A DNA stretch of 64,000 bases from Zygnema circumcarinatum SAG 698-1b (GCA_037447605.1 CM074812.1:930001-994000), one strand, 5' to 3'. Counted from the stretch's first letter, positions 995 to 64,000 are shown. A program made the numbers and translations. The notes: generated by a model from the letters alone, not told the origin.

Positions 995-2040
995 CGTGAT
1001 GTTAAGGAGCGTTATGTGGCTCTGCTTGAGCAGATGCTGTACGACATGACGCGAGGGCGCAACATCATTGTGAGCAGCGGAGCCCTTCAAGTGGCGGAGC
1101 TTCGCGGGCCCTACGATGCTGCGAACTTGGCCACGCTCTTTGGGTTTGACGCCAAGGGAGGGAGAGACGCTCTCTCGCACAATTGCATGTAAGCCCCGAT
1201 TTCTGATCACTTTCGTTCGTTGTTCTCTACTCTGGAGCACATCAGGTACAGAAAAATAGGTATGGTTGAACAGCTCAAATCAACTGCACACTTTCTGTAG
1301 CACTCTTTACTGCTAATAACGAGTATTTTGAGGTTGATGTGAACCATACCCAAGGTCGTAATCGTCATGTACCTTGTAGAAGGAACCCTGATTATGCAGT
1401 CTGATGTAACTCATATCTAACACGTATCATGAATTGGGTAAATTCCAGGGCTGTCCTTGCACGGAGTGAAGAAAGGAGGACCGCTTTTAAGGCCATAAAA
1501 GTTGAGAAGCTTCCGCAGCTTACCCCAGACCCTCCCTCTCTCCATTCAAAGCCTCGGGGCTCTCCTGCTGCAGCCAACCCCTCATATACCTTTGTGATTC
1601 CCAAAGAGTGGGATCCTCCTCAAGCTCCAAAAGCCACTGCTGCTTCGCCCTCTACTTTAGGTCACTCTCCTTTCAGAACAGGGGGAAGGGGCCCTACCCC
1701 TAGAGGGCCTCAGCTGAATGCTACCCCTCCGCAGAGCTCCTTCCCTTTCAGAAGAGATGGAGCTCTGTCTATGGAGGGTGGTTCAGTGCGGCCTTCAGAC
1801 AATACTGGAGGGCTGCACCTTGCAGGGAGTAAGAGGAGTACAGTAGAGGCTGTGGGAGAGCAGGCATTCCAAGATGATGGCTTCATTCCAATGGACCTTG
1901 ATCAGTATGATAATAATACAGAGCGGATGCGATCGAGCAGGAACTTGCAAAGTAAGTCAAGTCAGGCGGCAATGAGAGGATGGGGCTCACAAGGGGCGCT
2001 TAGGCGGGGCTCTGGTCGGTTCGGTAGGCAGGCTATATAG
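291..2040 (+). CDS. RPP30: RNase P/MRP subunit p30 (3' part; exons about 291-368, 649-729, 1034-1188, 1449-2040; upstream exons not resolved)
   Basis: GT-AG exons join in frame: VDIISVDLSSRLPFRFHRPMLDAAIQ / KGIFFEITYSAALRDVGARRQLFANAQ / MLYDMTRGRNIIVSSGALQVAELRGPYDAANLATLFG...SHNC / MAVLARSEERR. These match recalled plant RPP30 motifs (TRGxNIIxSS, ELRGPYDxxNL). Confidence 0.85.
930..997. repeat. (GAT)n microsatellite in an RPP30 intron
   Basis: Near-perfect gatgatgat run; it explains the poly-Met and poly-His ORFs. Confidence 0.95.
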
Positions 2041-12495: not shown

Positions 12496-22951
<10,456 letters not shown>

Positions 22952-55330: not shown

Positions 55331-57632
55331 CGACAGGAAAACGCAAAGACAACGACAAGAGGCTGCCACGTGGCCGCGGCAGAGGCAGCGGCAGCAGGCG
55401 CAACGGTCGGAAGCGCCGTTCGCGGGGCCTAGAGTCTATCAGAGGTAAAGAGGAGACTAAGACTGTTCTTAGGGTTTTTAGGGTTTTTAGGAATACACGC
55501 GTGTGAACTGAAGGGAGTAAACACAGTGCCGTACATTATTGATATTTCTTCTCGTAAATCAATCTCGAAGGGACATAGATCAATGAGTGTGGGTTCATGT
55601 TTCATGGTCAGCACTAGTAGAGGTACAACAGACAGGGTAACAGACCCAGTTTCGACATTAGGATGGTCCACATTAGATAGGATGAACGAAACAATGGAGG
55701 CACAGAAGGGTAAAATGTTCACTACCTGCTCTATTCGGAACTACAGTAGAGAGTCTTCTCCCAGTGGGGACTCTTCCCAAACAATATTTCGTATTCAGGG
55801 TGAATCGCCATTGGAAGACGCTCTTGCAAAAAGTCGTGCCAAGAATGCAGTAAACCGGAGGATGTAGGAGTTTAGTAGAGGGGGGCAGACAGTGAATTGG
55901 GAAATAGAATCTGAGTTAATTTCGAGTATCTAATCCCAGTCGATGCGCAAGACCTCCATGATATCATTCTAATCAACGACGAACAACTGAGTAAGTGGTT
56001 ACTCAAAATCTGAGGGGGGTCAAAGCGCCCGCTAGCTCCTCCCTGGGTCCGTCGCTAGCAGGTCGAGGATAAGCATGCAGGTACAAAGGTATGGGCAAGC
56101 TGATGCAGGATGTAGATGCGACCATATGCCATCAGTCACAGCTGGGTGAAGCTTCATTTCCTTCCAAGAAAAGGAAGGCCTTCAAGAGGGGAATTACAGT
56201 ACTGATTTCGCCCCAGCTCTGACCTGTACCAATATTCTCCAAGATTTTGATCCAAGTTCGTACTGTGGTTCGATCATACACTTTACATTAGTGCACATTC
56301 ATGGTTTGATATGCCAAAGCCTTGCCCAATCCTTGGCTTTCTNNNNNNNNNNGAAAAACAGCAGAAAAAGGGTGGAAAGGGCATAAAAGGCGAGAGCAGC
56401 TCAAAAAGAAGAAGCACAAGGACGAAGAGACGCAAAGGGGGAGACAAAAGGGAAAACGCAACACAGCAAGACAAGCTACGGCAGAAAATGTCAGAAAACA
56501 AGGCGAGAAACGTTAGAACAGAAAAAACCGCAGCAAAACAGCAGCAAAACAACCAAAAACAAAAAACAAAAAACGAAAAGAAGCACAAACAACAAAAACA
56601 GAGCAATGCAGCAAGACACGCGACAGGAAAACGCAAAGACAACGACAAGAGGCTGCCACGTGGCCGCGGCAGAGGCAGCGGCAGCAGGCGCAACGGTCGG
56701 AAGCGCCGTTCGCGGGGCCTAGAGTCTATCAGAGGTAAAGAGGAGACTAAGACTGTTCTTAGGGTTTTTAGGGTTTTTAGGAATACACGCGTGTGAACTG
56801 AAGGGAGTAAACACAGTGCCGTACATTATTGATATTTCTTCTCGTAAATCAATCTCGAAGGGACATAGATCAATGAGTGTGGGTTCATGTTTCATGGTCA
56901 GCACTAGTAGAGGTACAACAGACAGGGTAACAGACCCAGTTTCGACATTAGGATGGTCCACATTAGATAGGATGAACGAAACAATGGAGGCACAGAAGGG
57001 TAAAATGTTCACTACCTGCTCTATTCGGAACTACAGTAGAGAGTCTTCTCCCAGTGGGGACTCTTCCCAAACAATATTTCGTATTCAGGGTGAATCGCCA
57101 TTGGAAGACGCTCTTGCAAAAAGTCGTGCCAAGAATGCAGTAAACCGGAGGATGTAGGAGTTTAGTAGAGGGGGGCAGACAGTGAATTGGGAAATAGAAT
57201 CTGAGTTAATTTCGAGTATCTAATCCCAGTCGATGCGCAAGACCTCCATGATATCATTCTAATCAACGACGAACAACTGAGTAAGTGGTTACTCAAAATC
57301 TGAGGGGGGTCAAAGCGCCCGCTAGCTCCTCCCTGGGTCCGTCGCTAGCAGGTCGAGGATAAGCATGCAGGTACAAAGGTATGGGCAAGCTGATGCAGGA
57401 TGTAGATGCGACCATATGCCATCAGTCACAGCTGGGTGAAGCTTCATTTCCTTCCAAGAAAAGGAAGGCCTTCAAGAGGGGAATTACAGTACTGATTTCG
57501 CCCCAGCTCTGACCTGTACCAATATTCTCCAAGATTTTGATCCAAGTTCGTACTGTGGTTCGATCATACACTTTACATTAGTGCACATTCATGGTTTGAT
57601 ATGCCAAAGCCTTGCCCAATCCTTGGCTTTCT
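55066..57632. repeat. About 1.29-kb tandem duplication (55066-56342 and 56356-57632) across an N gap; probable assembly artefact
   Basis: ORFs 55526-55867 and 56816-57157 are identical (offset 1290); the junction is exactly the 10-N gap. Confidence 0.85.
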
Positions 57633-57912
57633 GCCTTTTCCGCATTTGTCAATGGACAATCTGTCGTCCTGTTTCGTAAGTTCCACGAGGGTTTAAAAGG
57701 GGAAGTCCAAGACTATAGACAATAGATATGCACGGGATGCATAGATCAGGTAGAACTGAGAGCATCGAACACAAACCCTCACCATTTTCAGGGGACATCA
57801 CATCGACAAAAAGTTGAGCTTTAACAATTGCCTTCCTTGGTACAAGCAGCAACGGAGCCCAACAGTGCGCTCAGCAGAGACAGGCCTCCCTCAGACCATG
57901 CGAGAGAGCAAC

Positions 57913-60900
57913 TCAGGCAGCGACGGCCTCTGTGATGGGGAACTCGAATGTGACCTCCTTGCCCGTCAGCTTCTTGTACACCCCCCCAAACGTCTCCAGC
58001 TTGTACTCAGTGCTGTTCCGCTCCTTCGGATCAAGATACACCTGCTCCAACAAGAGCTTGTTCTCCACTGCTTAGCGTTGTGGTTAACCTTGAAAGGTAA
58101 TAAAACAGTTCAAACGACAAGCTCCAAAAACCCACCAGCACAAACCCCCCCAGATTCTTGGAAGCTCTCCCTAAAAGAGTGCATCGGGGAGGCAGAGTTC
58201 CTAAACTAGGCTCACCCGCATAATGCGTGAACCATCGAGGCGGAAGCGCACACGCTTGCCCACAATCTCAGTGGGGAAGACCAGGTCCTCCAGAATGGCC
58301 TCGTGAACAGCAGTCAGCGTGCGGCTGCGCGGGCGGGTTGCAGCCGATCCCTTCTTTGGAGGCTTCATTATCCGGCGGGTGGCCACAATAACAACATCCT
58401 GCAAGCCACCATCCAGATGTGCAAAGAAATATTTACAAGTGTGCACCAGGGGAATTCAACATACGAATGGGATAGAGTGTAAGGAGACAGGAGGAGACAG
58501 TGGGGACGAAAGAAGAAAGCGAATGATACTACATTCGATGAATTAACTGGAGAAACGTGAAGTTCAGAAACTCTACAAGGGTATGGGGCCACACGTTCAG
58601 AAGGAAGCAGGAAAAGGTGCAAACTACTTGTCTAGGCTAAAACCGAGTTTGAATCCTCTCTAACTTCAGCACAAGTGAAAATTGAGGCTGACCTTAGAAG
58701 CACATACAAATGAAGTATCTACGTTAACCTAACAAACACTGACACAAATGGGTGTAAAGACGAGTTAGAATAATAGTGATTCAAAAAGGATAAGACTGTA
58801 CTAACTTTGCCACTGAATTTCTTCTCAAGCTCCCGTACAAGCCGTGCATGAATCTTCTGGAAGGCCTTCCTCAAACGGTAGGGGACATGTACAATAATGG
58901 CCTTCCGGCTGCTAGACACATCAATCTCCCTGTTCCAGCTCATTCACAGAGAAGAAATACAAAAGTGCACCTCAGTATACCAGATTTCATAGTTTTACCA
59001 CAGGGTTTCTGATACCATCTACTGCCGGACACAAAGTGCACAACAGACCTAGAGCAGACGTGACCACAACTAAGTACCCAAATCTACCATTAGTTTTCAA
59101 ACTCTATTTCTCACCAGATGGCTTCCATTGACAAGTTCGACTCGAAACTGTAGCTACCCTTTCCTAACGGTCTATCGAAGAGGCACTCGAGTACAGCAAA
59201 GAACCCCAATCTCCGTCTTGCAATCCAACTCGAGATACAAGTAATACACCTTTACATTTGCGTTTCAAAATGAGTCAAATTACATGAGAAGACCAAGCTC
59301 ACCTGGCTGAGTTGATGTACAAATCACGCAGGTCGCTTTTCAGCTCTTGGTTGGTGGCCTCCAAGTCAAACAATGCCTGAACAACGCAAAGACATACACA
59401 TGAGGAAATCGGCCTTGGCTCTCGTGCTCCCGTAGATAAGCAAAAAGTCAACACCCCAAAGTCCATCCCATAAACATCACAGCAAACTCTCTGATCAATC
59501 AAAAAGAGGAAAATGGCTGAGGCCTTCAAGATAAATGTCAAACCACAACCCTCATATTACCCTGACTATGTATAGCACAAGGAGACACGCGGAATCTGTG
59601 ATAAGCTAAACAATCCGAGTTCTATCTGGATCAGACTGACGTGCAAATGTGTCAATCCTCACAATGGGGCAAGCCCAAATAGGACTGGGGCGACAAAGGT
59701 CATCATCATATCCAGCATCAGATTTGGTGTGTGCCACTGATCAAATTGCTGAACCCACATATGCTTTCTAGGGTGCAGCAAACTCACACAGCCTAGCAAC
59801 TCACAGTTTCACTAACATAGCGTCAGCCAAAACAGCACATGCAAGGTATAAGGAAAGCCATAGCCCTTATCTTTCTATAAAAATGACAGGGTAAAAGGGG
59901 CATCTATTCCCTTATACGAAAACAAAATGGCAGGACCAACCTATGCCCGCTAAGTCTTATACGAGCTGAACGGTTGAAGAATCAGCATTCGACATCAAAC
60001 GAGCCTCATAAACTGCCCAGGCCTTCAAGATGATGGAGCAACAACGATATTTATAAAGGACTAGCTCTGTTACGGTAAGATAGCCCTTATCATCATTACA
60101 AACAGGCGGAATACTTAAACTTCTGAGGCAAAACAGCTTAAAAATTAAAAAAATAGCCGCCTGAGTATTGGATCAGACTGACGTGCAAATGTGTCAATCC
60201 TCATAATGGGCGAGCCCAAATAGGACTGGGGCGACAAAAGTCATCATCATATCCAGCCTCATAAAAATCTCTTTACGAGCTTAACGGTTGAGAATCAGCA
60301 TTCGACATCAAAAAAAGACTCATAAACTGCCCAGGCTTCTAAGACGATCAAGCAACAACGATACAGGACTAGCTCTGTTACGGTAACATAGCTCTTATCC
60401 TCACTACAAAACAAGCAGAATACTTGGACTTCTGAGGCAAAACCGTATAAAAACTAAAACCTAGTTGCCTGGGTATTGGATCAGACTGACGTGCAAATGT
60501 GTCAATCCTCACAATGGGCAAAGCCCAAATAGGACTGGGGCGACAAAAGTCATCATCATATCCAGCATCCGACAAATCTTTTTACGAGCTTAACGGTTGA
60601 AGAATCAGCATTCGACATCAAAAAAAGCCTCATAAACTGCCCAGCCTTCTAAGACGATCGAGCAACAACGATACAGGACTAGCTCTGTTCCGGTCAGATA
60701 GCTCTTATCCTCACTACAATAGAAGCAGAATATTTGGATTTCTGAGGCAAGACCGTATAGAAACTAAAACATAGCCGCCTGGGTATTGGATCAGACTGAC
60801 GTGCAAATGTGTCAATCCTCACAATGGGGCAAGCCCAAATAGGACTGGGGCGACAAAGGTCATCATCATATCCAGCATCAGATAAGACTTTATACGAACT

Positions 60901-62707
60901 TAACGGTTGAAAAATCAGCATTCGACATAAAAAAGCCTCATAACGGCCTGGGCCTTTAAGACGATAGAGCAACAACGATATTTGACCAGGACTAGCTCTG
61001 TTATCGTAAGATAGCTCCTATCCTTACCACAAAACGAGCAGAATACTTGATTTCTTAGGCAAAACAGCATAAAAACTAAAACGTTAGCCGCCTGAATATT
61101 GGGTCAGACTAACGTGCAAATGTGTCAATCCTCATAATGGGCGAGCCCAAATAGGACTGGGGCGACAAAGGTCATCATCATATCCAGCATCAGATAAGGC
61201 TTTATACGAACTTAACGGTTGAAAAATCAGCATTCGACATAAAAAAGCCTCATAACTGCCTGGGCCTTTAAGACGATCGAGCAACAACGATATTTGTCCA
61301 GGACTAGATATGTTATCGTAAGGTAGCTCCTATCCTTACCACAAAACAAGCAGAATACTTGATTTCTTAGGCGAAACAGCATAAAAACTACAACATTAGC
61401 CGCCTGAATATTGGGTCAGACTGACGTGCAAATGTGTCAATCCTCATAATGGGCGAGCCCAAATAGGACTGGGGCGACAAAGGTCATCATCATATCCAGC
61501 ATCAGATAAGGCTTTATACGAACTTAACGGTTGAAAAATCAGCATTCGACATAAAAAAGCCTCATAACTGCCTGGGCCTTTAAGACGATCGAGCAACAAC
61601 GACATTTGTCCAGGACTAGATATGTTATCGTAAGGTAGCTCCTATCCTTCCCACAAAACAAGCAGAATACTTGATTTCTTAGGCAAAACAGCATAAAAAC
61701 TACAACATTAGACGCCTGAATATTGGTCAGACTGACGTGCAAATGTGTCAATCCTCATAATGGGCGAGCCCAAATAGGACTGGGGCGACAAAGGTCATCA
61801 TCATATCCAGCATCAGATTAGGCGTCTCCTACTATTCGAATTGCTCACCACCTAAGCTTTCAAGGGTGCAGCAAAATCACAAAGCCTAGCGACTCACATT
61901 GAACTAACGTAGCATAAGCCAACAAGTGCACATGTAAGGTGTAGGTAAAGAAATAGCCCTATCAGAGTAACAGCGCAATAGGGGCATCCGTTCCTTTACA
62001 CGAAGCAAAACGCAGAAGTAAAATTCCGCATCTAATTCCAGTAGCCTAGACTGTTGATAACAGCATATTCAGTTTAGCTTCCACCTGACCAATGTGCAGA
62101 TGTGTCGTTCCACACAACGGAGCAACCCCAATTAGGCGACGAGGTCATCCTCTACCTATACCAGCTAAGTCTTTTAAGAAGCTTACGGTTGAAGTATCAG
62201 CATTCGGCAAAGCCTCCCGAACTGCACAGTTCTTTCAGACGATCGAGTAGCAACAATACTTATGCAGGACTGGCCCTGTTATGGTAAGATAGCTACTATC
62301 CTTCACTACAAAACAAGCAGAACGCTTGAACTTCAGAGGCAAAACCGCAAAAGAACTAAAACAGTAGCCGCCTGGGTATTGGATCAGACTGACGTGCAAA
62401 TGTGTCAATCCTCATAATGGGCGAGCCCAAATAGGACTGGGGCGACAAAGGTCATCATCACCTCCAATACTCAAACCTTCCTGGCATGATTGATCGATTG
62501 ATCAACCAAAAAATGTGTGACAAAACTTAAATACTGTTCACCATTTAAACCCTCTTAACTCCCTTCACCTTCCCCAAGCTCACGCTCTCCTCCTCTCACA
62601 TTTAATGCAAGCGGTGCATGCATGCAGCTCACCTGAGCCACCGTTTCCTCCAATTCATCAGGTTCCAACCCCTTCTCCTTTTGAATCTTCCTCCGTGCTG
62701 TTAACAT
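57913..62707 (-). CDS. RPS7: 40S ribosomal protein S7 (eS7); exons 62633-62707, 59303-59376, 58806-58929, 58216-58398, 57913-58041 (194 aa)
   Basis: [25 protein letters not shown]|[25 protein letters not shown]|EIDV...[13 protein letters not shown]|[10 protein letters not shown]...[28 protein letters not shown]|[18 protein letters not shown]; all junctions are GT-AG and in frame. Confidence 0.97.
59627..62466 (-). ncRNA. Intronic box C/D snoRNA array: copies at 59627-59714, 60169-60255, 60477-60564, 60787-60874, 61100-61186, 61412-61498, 61724-61809 and 62380-62466; decayed copy at about 62085-62165
   Basis: Sense unit UGGAU-AUGAUGA(C)-...-UUGUCGCCCCAGUC-...-AUGAGGA(C')-...-AUUUGCACGUCAG-U-CUGA(D)-UCCA with a terminal stem. 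The guides are complementary to the conserved LSU rRNA motifs CUGACGUGCAAAU and GGCUGGGGCGGCA (recalled). Same strand as RPS7. Confidence 0.85.
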
Positions 62708-63161: not shown

Positions 63162-63448
63162 AAACCCTAATTTGCAAACATTCACGACCGGTGCCGGCTG
63201 TCCATAAAACCAGGCTACTTACTTTCACAGAATTCAATCACATAAACTCTAATCCTGATAGGCCTTACGGCCTATGTTACCCCGCATTCGCCTTCCCCCC
63301 TCCCACTTCCCACGTGCCATGGACGTCTAAACGGAGAAACAAGCGGCTTTCAGCGAGAATGTGTTATCGCGAAAGCGGGCCCATGAAAGAGAGTGCAGAA
63401 AGAGAGGGAGAGAGAAAATGCGAGGCCCAAAAGTTCACATAACCCTAA
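63162..63448 (-). promoter_or_regulatory. Telo-boxes (AAACCCTA at 63162 and 63441) and site II elements (GGCCCA at 63378 and 63424) upstream of RPS7
   Basis: Motifs read directly; the telo-box + site II pairing is established for plant ribosomal protein promoters. Confidence 0.55.
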
Positions 63449-64000
63449 ACTACAACCCTACCCTACCCTACCCTATACAGAGCTCAACAGTCTCCAACTG
63501 AAAGAGCAGGAAGCCTTTACTGCTATGCCGGTGTGCATGTTGCAACAGGGCGGCCTTGGCGGCAGGTGCTCACCTCTAGAGGGCGCGCTGCGAGCAGGAG
63601 AGGGAGCCCGGACGGAGCCTCGCGGGGGAGGAGGCGCGGCGGAAAGGGCCGGCGCGGAGGGCTGCAACCTCTTTATACTTGTCCAACCCTAAAATTTGGA
63701 CAGCGGCAGCCGTCGATTGGCACCACGTGGAACCATCTGGACCGTTGGTTGGATCGGAGCTCGGCCCTGAACCCTCTGACGAGCTGCGTGCGTCACATGA
63801 TGGCTGAATAGCAGGCGGTTTATATGTGCAGTTCTTTGGGTCCCGTTACAGTTCGCAGTTCCTAGTTCACCGTTTAACAGGTAACTGGTTTGCTCAAAGT
63901 TCTCACGACGGCCTTCTCTGCAGTTCAGTTACGGCGAGATGCTAAAAATGAAATATGATTCCAGTTATAAAGTTCTCCATGGGCTCTGTACGGATATTCT

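Follow-up and report, generated by a model that had tools for sequence, protein, structure and literature searches.

The intron that follows codon 25 of RPS7 in Zygnema circumcarinatum SAG 698-1b very probably (we put this at about 0.85) carries one box C/D snoRNA gene of the U31/snR67 lineage in eight tandem copies. Within the window, that is, the whole 64,000-nucleotide stretch of DNA analysed, this intron carries eight intact box C/D snoRNA genes of 86-88 nt and one decayed copy, all in the sense of RPS7; the intact units were found in three ways, by pattern search, by a direct-repeat search (family D3), and with Rfam. The first-pass annotation had proposed tandem amplification, in host sense within the RPS7 intron, of a box C/D snoRNA with two guides, and the Rfam matches, the boxes, and the spliced junction of the intron all support that proposal. 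The snoRNA is of an already known kind, a box C/D snoRNA of U31/snR67 type, to which the eight-copy RPS7-intron array is added here. As an annotatable locus it comprises eight snoRNA genes, one pseudogene, and two predicted LSU methylation sites (Table 1).

The host gene was identified as RPS7 from the translations of its exons and from Pfam Ribosomal_S7e on the homologues. The intron is 3256 nt long, in phase 0, and bounded by GT..AG, and its junction (62632/62633) is found spliced, on the minus strand, in RNA contigs of three runs. Word depth in the RNA contigs is approximately 10^4 for the RPS7 exons versus approximately 10-90 for the intron; RPS7 is very highly transcribed, and the intron is removed by splicing. 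The assembled contigs contain the intron at the pre-mRNA level only and show no mature RNA of approximately 87 nt, and word depth is raised over the snoRNA parts because the eight copies share the same words.

Table 1. Features of the RPS7 locus and its intronic snoRNA array (positions counted from the first nucleotide of the window; the snoRNA copies are numbered in the order of transcription).
Feature	Position	Strand	Evidence and remarks
RPS7 coding exon 1	62633..62707	-	25 codons from ATG; translation, ~10^4 word depth, junction
RPS7 intron hosting the array	59377..62632	-	junction in 3 runs, intron ends read
snoRNA copy A1, first transcribed	62377..62469	-	7-bp terminal stem; snoZ122 44.6 bits, snoU31b 41.0 bits
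Decayed copy (pseudo-snoRNA)	62085..62160 (about)	-	66/83 identical to A5; no Rfam match
snoRNA copy A2	61718..61812	-	3′ half of terminal stem shortened; snoU31b 34.7 bits, below gathering score 37
snoRNA copy A3	61409..61501	-	U-to-C beside D box, weaker terminal stem; snoU31b 37.1, snoZ122 33.1 bits
snoRNA copy A4	61097..61189	-	D-guide C-to-U and the stem change of A3; snoU31b 37.2, snoZ122 29.1 bits
snoRNA copy A5, reference copy	60784..60877	-	snoU31b 43.6, snoZ122 39.3 bits
A5 parts, 5′ half	stem 60874-60871, C box 60869-60863, D′ guide 60857-60844, D′ box 60843-60840		
A5 parts, 3′ half	hairpin 60837-60825, C′ box 60821-60816, D guide 60808-60795, D box 60794-60791, stem 60790-60787		
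snoRNA copy A6	60474..60567	-	snoU31b 44.1, snoZ122 41.8 bits
snoRNA copy A7	60166..60258	-	snoU31b 43.8, snoZ122 38.2 bits
snoRNA copy A8, last transcribed	59624..59717	-	~250 nt upstream of 3′ splice site; snoU31b 43.6, snoZ122 38.1 bits
Block B, seven ~225-nt spacers alternating with snoRNA copies	59948..62383	-	duplicated spacer sequence
Block C, extra block in long spacer before A8	59716..59947	-	second copy 61811-62084
RPS7 coding exon 2	59303..59376	-	translation; 88-92% against exon 2 of relatives L051-L053, 79% against that of L054

Start-to-start spacing of the copies is 309-312 bp in five intervals, and 541 and 657 bp in the other two; TRF gives a period of 312 bp with 6 copies and 91% matches. 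Of the earlier description of eight units at about 310-bp spacing, the number of units stands, whereas the two longer intervals restrict the spacing to the six central copies. That description also mentioned a guide substitution in one copy and the decay of another, and both are present. In A4 the D guide has changed from GUCAGU to GUUAGU, which amounts to a G-U wobble at guide position 4, while the decayed copy has a 7-nt deletion in its D′ guide, no D box, and mutated C and C′ boxes.

The C box AUGAUGA and the D box CUGA occur in 8/8 copies; the C′ box (UGAGGA) is good and the D′ box (CCUA) degenerate across copies. The terminal stem (UGGA/UCCA) comprises 4 bp in A5-A8, 7 bp in A1, and 3 bp in A2-A4, where it has been weakened through a U-to-C change or a deletion, and all copies have a hairpin of 4-5 bp between D′ and C′, folded in A5. 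Pattern search and folding recover every element previously listed, namely the C, C′, and D boxes, the terminal stem, and the internal stem. Rfam matches to two families, snoU31b (RF01285, gathering score 37) and snoZ122 (RF00343, gathering score 38), are found on the host-sense strand only, the former spanning the D′ guide of each copy and the latter the D guide. The snoU31b model is matched over its full length in all eight copies at 34.7-44.1 bits, seven of them at or above the gathering score (37.1-44.1) and A2 at 34.7. The scores for snoZ122 range from 28.7 to 44.6 bits, with five copies passing (38.1-44.6) and three below (28.7-33.1). Given the weak terminal stems of A2-A4 and their position at or below the Rfam thresholds, the number of productive copies may be below eight.

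The likeness to U31/snR67/plant snoU31b (RF01285) includes, besides the full-length covariance match, an identical D′ guide core, UUGUCGCCCCAGUC; as in the U31b consensus, the C′ box is followed by UUGAC, and the geometry of the terminal stem is equal. The plant consensus differs in having a short, U-rich, unconserved stretch where the Zygnema RNA has a 14-nt D guide. In yeast, the second guide of snR67 is directed to another site, U2724. The consensus of rice snoZ122 (RF00343) shares an identical D guide and D box, AUUUGCACGUCAGU-CUGA, but is without a conserved D′ guide. Two Rfam families, which are separate in flowering plants, fall on one RNA here, as they also do in distant eukaryotes. 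The genomic setting is different as well: in Arabidopsis, U31a/b belong to duplicated clusters of mixed snoRNAs (PMC8053127) rather than to an intron of RPS7.

Rice, Drosophila, and Chlamydomonas are known to have clusters of snoRNA genes within introns. Literature summaries describe several snoRNA genes per spliceosomal intron, in host sense and derived from local duplication, as is the case here; those clusters are of mixed species, whereas all eight genes of the RPS7 intron specify the same snoRNA. Where an intronic cluster is taken as at least two snoRNA genes within one spliced intron in host sense, the RPS7 intron contains eight such genes, each with Rfam support. The notion that several snoRNAs per intron would be unusual does not hold for this lineage, considering these described clusters, and the array in the RPS7 intron, although real, is rather unremarkable as gene arrangements of the plant/algal lineage go.

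Complementarity to rRNA was judged on generic eukaryotic LSU (primers and rRNA printed in papers); rDNA was sought in three viral-contig scans, which returned none and only 48 chance 15-mer matches. On this generic LSU the D′ guide, UUUGUCGCCCCAGU, forms 13 pairs, including 2 G-U, with GACUGGGGCGGUA, and a count of 5 nt from CCUA leads to the second G of the P-loop GGGG. The D′ guide had earlier been aimed at the snR190 region, a claim which is not supported, given the Rfam snoU31b match in all copies, this being the P-loop guide of U31/snR67; an snR190 identity was likewise rejected since Rfam gives no snR190 match up to E=10 and the D′ guide is of the U31/snR67 type. The target assignment is corrected here from snR190 to U31/snR67. 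The D′ target had also been quoted wrongly as GGCUGGGGCGGCA; the P-loop target is present in a published 28S primer, which reads GAGUUUGACUGGGGCGGUA. Since the snoU31b match covers the D′ guide, the guide points to the conserved P-loop G and, judged from its sequence, should direct methylation at the equivalent of yeast G2619 / Arabidopsis G2620. In Arabidopsis, U31 guides 25S G2620, the methylation of which is lowered in the hid2 mutant (PMC8053127), and this residue corresponds to Gm2619/snR67 in yeast and Gm4166/U31 in human (PMC8817022). The supplements for Ostreococcus contain no U31-type entry.

The D guide AUUUGCACGUCAGU, which lies directly 5′ of CUGA and is identical in seven copies (A4 having one C-to-U), forms 13 Watson-Crick pairs with CUGACGUGCAAAU of the generic eukaryotic LSU. 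Published sequences show this target to be a universal LSU primer site that is also found in chicken 28S. The complementarity to CUGACGUGCAAAU and the placing of the +5 residue at the A of CUGAC, both claimed earlier, are supported on generic LSU, and the guide is predicted to direct methylation of this A in CUGACGUGC, LSU domain II. Yeast snR50 (Gm867) pairs with the same LSU stretch, and the predicted Zygnema site would adjoin G867; unlike snR50, the +5 rule here gives A and not G, and Rfam reports no snR50 match. By yeast numbering and spacing logic, we provisionally take the site to be the A after yeast G867, which would presumably be A877 in Arabidopsis 25S (yeast +9, own numbering). In the RiboMeth-seq table for Arabidopsis, methylated sites are absent between A826 and A885 of 25S (PMC8053127), so that the site of the D guide is seemingly unused there and its use in Zygnema is a prediction. 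Literature text searches for the annotated target of Z122 gave no description.

With guides that pair with two distant LSU regions, and which are kept together in distant eukaryotes, the snoRNA could be regarded mainly as a folding chaperone joining LSU domains II and V, amplified for stoichiometric amounts; the first-pass annotation had suggested dosage amplification of a guide bridging two distant LSU domains, perhaps as such a chaperone. However, no feature sets it apart from dual guides of the ordinary sort; each duplex follows the +5 methylation rule, the P-loop is a proven methylation site, and, judged from the consensus lines, angiosperms have the two guides in separate Rfam families, which indicates that their linkage is not required. 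It is common for C/D snoRNAs to carry two guides for distant sites, and there is no evidence for a chaperone bridging two domains, a role we consider highly improbable. The general view of how snoRNAs work is unchanged by the RPS7 array.

The mean pairwise difference between units is 4.6% in the snoRNA versus 20% in the spacer, and variable columns number 10/89 versus 112/229, respectively (Fisher p=1e-10), in agreement with the earlier observation that the snoRNA is far better conserved than the spacers. The 310-bp unit might nonetheless consist of two genes, the C/D snoRNA and a second structured RNA in block B, and perhaps block C. Certain runs, such as GAAUGCUGAU and UCAACCGU, do not vary among the seven spacers; the spacer before A8 possesses a perfect AUGAUGA with CUGA approximately 105 nt downstream; and long-range pairing is predicted by RNAalifold, including a single GC/AU exchange. 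Conservation of the spacers is, however, flat, with approximately 50% invariant columns and no island near the level of the snoRNA. The RNAalifold covariation term is +0.31, with a double change in 2 of the 45 predicted pairs, and spacers folded singly do not outperform shuffled sequences (z of 0.56 and -1.13 for block B and -0.46 for block C). The candidate C box is intact in 3/7 spacers and a terminal stem is absent; the spacers have no Rfam match up to E=10, and no further copies of them occur in the rest of the window or at the metagenomic loci. A search of block C for H/ACA or C/D features, by eye and by folding, revealed nothing consistent between its two copies. On the basis of the flat conservation, the lack of covariation, the shuffle-like folds, the C box count, and the Rfam result, we rejected the idea that the spacers contain another RNA gene, and a two-gene unit is very unlikely.

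The two copies of block C and the spacing of repeat families D7 and D8 in the direct-repeat search (2093 and 2084 bp) indicate an older higher-order duplication of approximately 2.09 kb. The array probably grew in this lineage by unequal crossing-over, with the older duplication of about 2.1 kb preceding a recent amplification of the 310-bp unit, three units having spacers that are only 2-6% apart; selection would hold the snoRNA part as the spacers drift, and some copies are beginning to decay. Read in this manner, it is a tidy case of birth-and-death evolution of snoRNA genes in a ribosomal-protein intron. A less favourable reading is that the array is mostly dead weight, consisting of one or a few functional copies and otherwise of young neutral duplicates with no dosage function. 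One copy has already decayed, stem-weakening changes are common to A2-A4 with a guide change too in A4, and the spacers of these three units differ by only 2-6%, which makes them too young to show selection. Against this, the older units (A1, A5, A6, A7, and the A2-4 group) differ by 20-30% in their spacers and by only 2-9% in the snoRNA, from which it follows that at least 4-5 copy lineages have stayed intact, whether through selection or through gene conversion confined to the snoRNA. We consider an array of mostly idle copies unlikely, while granting it some weight.

Relatives were reached by searching with RPS7 exon 4 alone (82-89% identity). In three of them the RPS7 intron is present at the same position with a length of 196-218 nt, and no snoRNA match was found in the RPS7 loci of five relatives; the intron of approximately 200 nt without a snoRNA in three relatives suggests that the array arose in this lineage. 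The absence of the insert from relatives would also suit a satellite, or a snoRNA borne by a transposon (a retrogene or captured fragment), independent of host expression. Yet the borders of the array have no terminal inverted repeats, its ends show neither a poly-A tail nor a target-site duplication, and no copy of any block exists elsewhere in the 64 kb. All copies are in host sense, a must for intron-processed snoRNAs, and the snoRNA part is under constraint, so that a mobile or satellite origin of this type is scarcely credible.

Expression of the array of intronic snoRNA genes can be pictured by analogy with plant polycistronic and intronic clusters. Each C/D kink-turn in the intron RNA would be bound by the core proteins Snu13/15.5K, Nop56, Nop58, and fibrillarin, after which endonucleases would cut the spacers of approximately 225 nt and exonucleases would trim to the protein-protected ends. 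With such cutting and trimming, one host transcript could yield up to eight snoRNAs of approximately 87 nt. By the same analogy, the D′ guide UUUGUCGCCCCAGU would pair with the LSU P-loop, leading to 2′-O-methylation of the second G in GGGG, whereas pairing of the D guide AUUUGCACGUCAGU would be with the domain II stretch CUGACGUGCAAAU of the LSU, leading to methylation of the A of CUGAC.

Pattern search also revealed two metagenomic eukaryotes, unrelated to each other, in which a single C/D unit has both guides, and where the units are again intronic and the hosts are translation-related genes, one for an eEF3-like ABC protein and the other for a Brix/RPF2-like protein. The occurrence of a two-guide snoRNA in two unrelated metagenomic eukaryotes suggests that the combination is old, and one RNA for two families hints at the origin of the single-guide plant snoRNAs. 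A possible scenario, offered tentatively, is that the ancestral eukaryotic U31-type snoRNA was a dual guide (P-loop G and CUGAC A), preserved in the Zygnema lineage and the two metagenomic eukaryotes; that angiosperm snoU31b and snoZ122 are descendants keeping one guide each; and that in Zygnema the ancestral form entered RPS7 intron 1, where it was multiplied to eight copies. If this is true, snoRNA output would be tied to ribosomal-protein transcription, and splicing-independent cutting of the 3.3-kb intron would be needed. The C box, the D′ guide, the UUGAC motif, the D guide, and the D box are common to the Zygnema and metagenomic units, and the hairpin between D′ and C′ is kept in the latter with unrelated sequence. 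The D′ box of locus L002 reads CUUA, like that of the U31b consensus in Rfam, and the one of L001 reads CCGA.

The tandem array at 59627-62466 was recorded by TRF as a 312-bp period present in 6 copies with a 91% match, while a repeat finder resolved eight copies of a unit of ~97 nt, spaced at 541, 309, 310, 312, 312, 311, and 658 bp in plus-strand order. On the minus strand each unit opens with CUGGAU-AUGAUGA and closes with CUGA-UCCA. Every copy matches two curated Rfam C/D families along their full models: snoU31b (RF01285; 34.7-44.1 bits), whose gathering score of 37 is passed by seven copies, and snoZ122 (RF00343; 28.7-44.6 bits), whose gathering score of 38 is passed by five. No other family came near in the Rfam search of the array. 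Alignment with the Rfam consensus sequences reveals that the unit shares with U31b the C box, the D′ guide UUGUCGCCCCAGUC, the D′ box region, and a C′-UUGAC motif, and with Z122 the D guide and D box (AUUUGCACGUCAGU-CUGA) and the terminal stem.

Features of the snoRNA array, its host intron, and a related metagenomic locus (A5, reference copy; L002, metagenomic eukaryote locus, in its own coordinates)
Feature	Position	Strand	Remark
RPS7 intron hosting array	59377-62632	minus	phase 0 after codon 25; RNA-contig junction
A5 5′ stem	60874-60871	minus	
A5 C box	60869-60863	minus	
A5 D′ guide	60857-60844	minus	
A5 D′ box	60843-60840	minus	CCUA
A5 hairpin	60837-60825	minus	
A5 C′ box	60821-60816	minus	UGAGGA
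A5 D guide	60808-60795	minus	
A5 D box	60794-60791	minus	
A5 3′ stem	60790-60787	minus	
Decayed snoRNA copy	about 62085-62160	minus	in one long spacer; 66/83 identical
L002 tandem U31-type snoRNAs	1057-1144 and 1238-1324		

The host gene, RPS7, lies on the minus strand, on which the snoRNA units also read. The exon preceding the array translates into 25 protein letters and that following it into 24; the later exons encode ribosomal protein S7e, and Pfam PF01251 is found on all homologues. The contigs of three RNA runs contain a splice junction that leaves out 3256 nt, the ends of which are GT..AG in minus-strand reading, and word depth in the RNA contigs is ~10^4 over the RPS7 exons versus ~10-90 over the array intron; the intron was delimited on these two grounds. 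Depth over the snoRNA parts is accounted for by words shared among the copies and is therefore no evidence of accumulation.

Among the seven units having a following spacer, the snoRNA part (89 nt) differs by a mean of 4.6%, compared with 20% for the spacer (~225 nt), and variable alignment columns number 10 of 89 and 112 of 229, respectively (Fisher p=1e-10). Between the older unit lineages the spacers are 20-30% apart, whereas the snoRNAs are 2-9% apart. Since the spacers diverge far more, the snoRNA sequence must be maintained by selection, or by gene conversion restricted to this part. The spacers of the three central units (A2-A4) are only 2-6% different, and these units are a recent amplification. 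Terminal stems are weakened in these same copies, and in A4 a G-U wobble adjoins the target position as well; there may be five productive copies rather than eight. Both long spacers contain extra blocks (repeat families D7 and D8), which lie ~2.09 kb apart and show an older, larger duplication. The decayed copy carries a 7-nt deletion in its D′ guide and has lost the D box. In RNA run X2 one A is added after 60928, within an A-run of a spacer; either the array is polymorphic in length at this point or it was assembled differently.

Whether the spacers hold a second RNA, itself conserved and covarying, was considered, and no support for it emerged. Conservation is even along the spacer, the RNAalifold fold (-24 kcal/mol) has a covariation term of +0.31 and double changes in 2 of 45 pairs, and single-sequence folds were no better than shuffles. 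Only three of the seven spacers have an intact candidate C box, and the spacers have no match in Rfam. No spacer copies were found elsewhere in the window or in the metagenomic loci, nor transposon-like inverted ends at the array.

The predicted targets lie in LSU rRNA. Against the sequence GAGUUUGACUGGGGCGGUA, read from a published 28S primer, the D′ guide pairs with GACUGGGGCGGUA at 13 positions, two of them G-U, and the fifth position from the D′ box is the second G of the G run. By 23S numbering, this region is the P-loop of helix 80. The first-pass annotation had assigned the guide to the snR190 region; because it pairs with the sequence of the U31/snR67 site, that assignment was wrong, as was the target sequence quoted for it. 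The equivalents of this site are Arabidopsis G2620, yeast Gm2619 (snR67), human Gm4166 (U31), and Dictyostelium Gm2952 (PMC8817022). Methylation of Arabidopsis 25S G2620 is guided by U31, and in the hid2 mutant both U31a/b and G2620 methylation are lower (PMC8053127).

In published eukaryotic LSU sequence, the D guide is exactly complementary to CUGACGUGCAAAU. This stretch is where the LSU reverse primer ACGAACGATTTGCACGTCAG binds, a primer in wide use that has been applied to green algae; it also occurs in chicken 28S and is thus universal in eukaryotic LSU rRNA. The earlier proposal that this guide pairs with LSU rRNA and, by the +5 rule, addresses the A of CUGAC is borne out as a prediction. 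Going by the 9 nt that separate Gm867 from Am876, this A is presumably the nucleotide after yeast G867, and with a numbering of yeast +9 it would be Arabidopsis A877. The Arabidopsis table of methylated 25S sites has none between A826 and A885 (PMC8053127), so the site appears to be unused there; its use in Zygnema is only a prediction.

Metagenome contigs scanned for units that combine both guides returned two loci. The first (L001), GC-rich and marine, carries the snoRNA once, within an intron of an eEF3-like ABC/HEAT gene. In the second (L002), a tandem pair of copies shares one intron of a Brix/RPF2-like gene, and one member of the pair possesses both guides. The upstream member retains the P-loop (U31) guide with one G for U and has a different D guide; on a small scale, the pair illustrates how a guide is replaced once a snoRNA has been duplicated in tandem. 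Alignment reveals that the C box, D′ guide, UUGAC motif, D guide, and D box are conserved in all three organisms. A short D′-C′ hairpin is also kept, despite unrelated sequences. The two-guide combination is therefore old. Flowering plants have the two guides in separate Rfam families, which suggests, by inference only, that each family later lost one of them.

With RPS7 exon 4 as query, homologues were recovered at 82-89% identity, and five genomic loci were compared, including one from the liverwort Calypogeia fissa. The exon 1-exon 2 arrangement is the same in three of the five, with a gap of only 196-218 nt. None of the five contains a snoRNA at Rfam gathering scores or E<=0.05, or either guide motif. 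From the short intron in three relatives and the missing snoRNA in all five loci, the array was acquired and expanded in the lineage of this alga; the relatives compared may be distant. One of these loci (L051) has a palindromic hairpin at 13703-13817, matched on both strands by several miRNA-precursor models far below gathering scores, which is probably an inverted-repeat element.

According to summaries of the literature, rice, Drosophila, and Chlamydomonas have intronic snoRNA gene clusters, and plant snoRNA families are as a rule multi-copy. Modestly new are the eightfold occurrence of the same snoRNA inside one ribosomal-protein intron, an insertion specific to the lineage of this alga, and the union of two Rfam families in one RNA. 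Beyond the observed sequence features, family membership, constraint, and splicing, plant intronic and polycistronic clusters suggest that core proteins would assemble on each unit, that the multi-snoRNA intron would undergo endonucleolytic separation followed by exonucleolytic trimming, and that fibrillarin would methylate both predicted sites. Ideas of dosage and of a “folding chaperone” are speculation.

The surroundings of RPS7 yielded further observations. In exon 1, one contig of RNA run X1 diverges from the window past 62682, its letters being similar but different, which suggests that a paralogue or allele of RPS7 with another N-terminal exon is expressed. Upstream of the start are telomere-like motifs, AAACCCTAA and AACCCTAAA, at 63162-63170 and 63441-63449; the “telo boxes” of plants are described from the 5′ regions of genes that cycling cells express (PMC3022908). 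Downstream, at about 55500-57720 in minus-strand reading, is a direct repeat of ~1.29 kb in which the translated segments 57577-57425 and 56287-56135 are identical and which includes a run of N (assembly gap) near 56300-56340. Possible origins are an LTR pair, tandem duplication, and an artefact of assembly.
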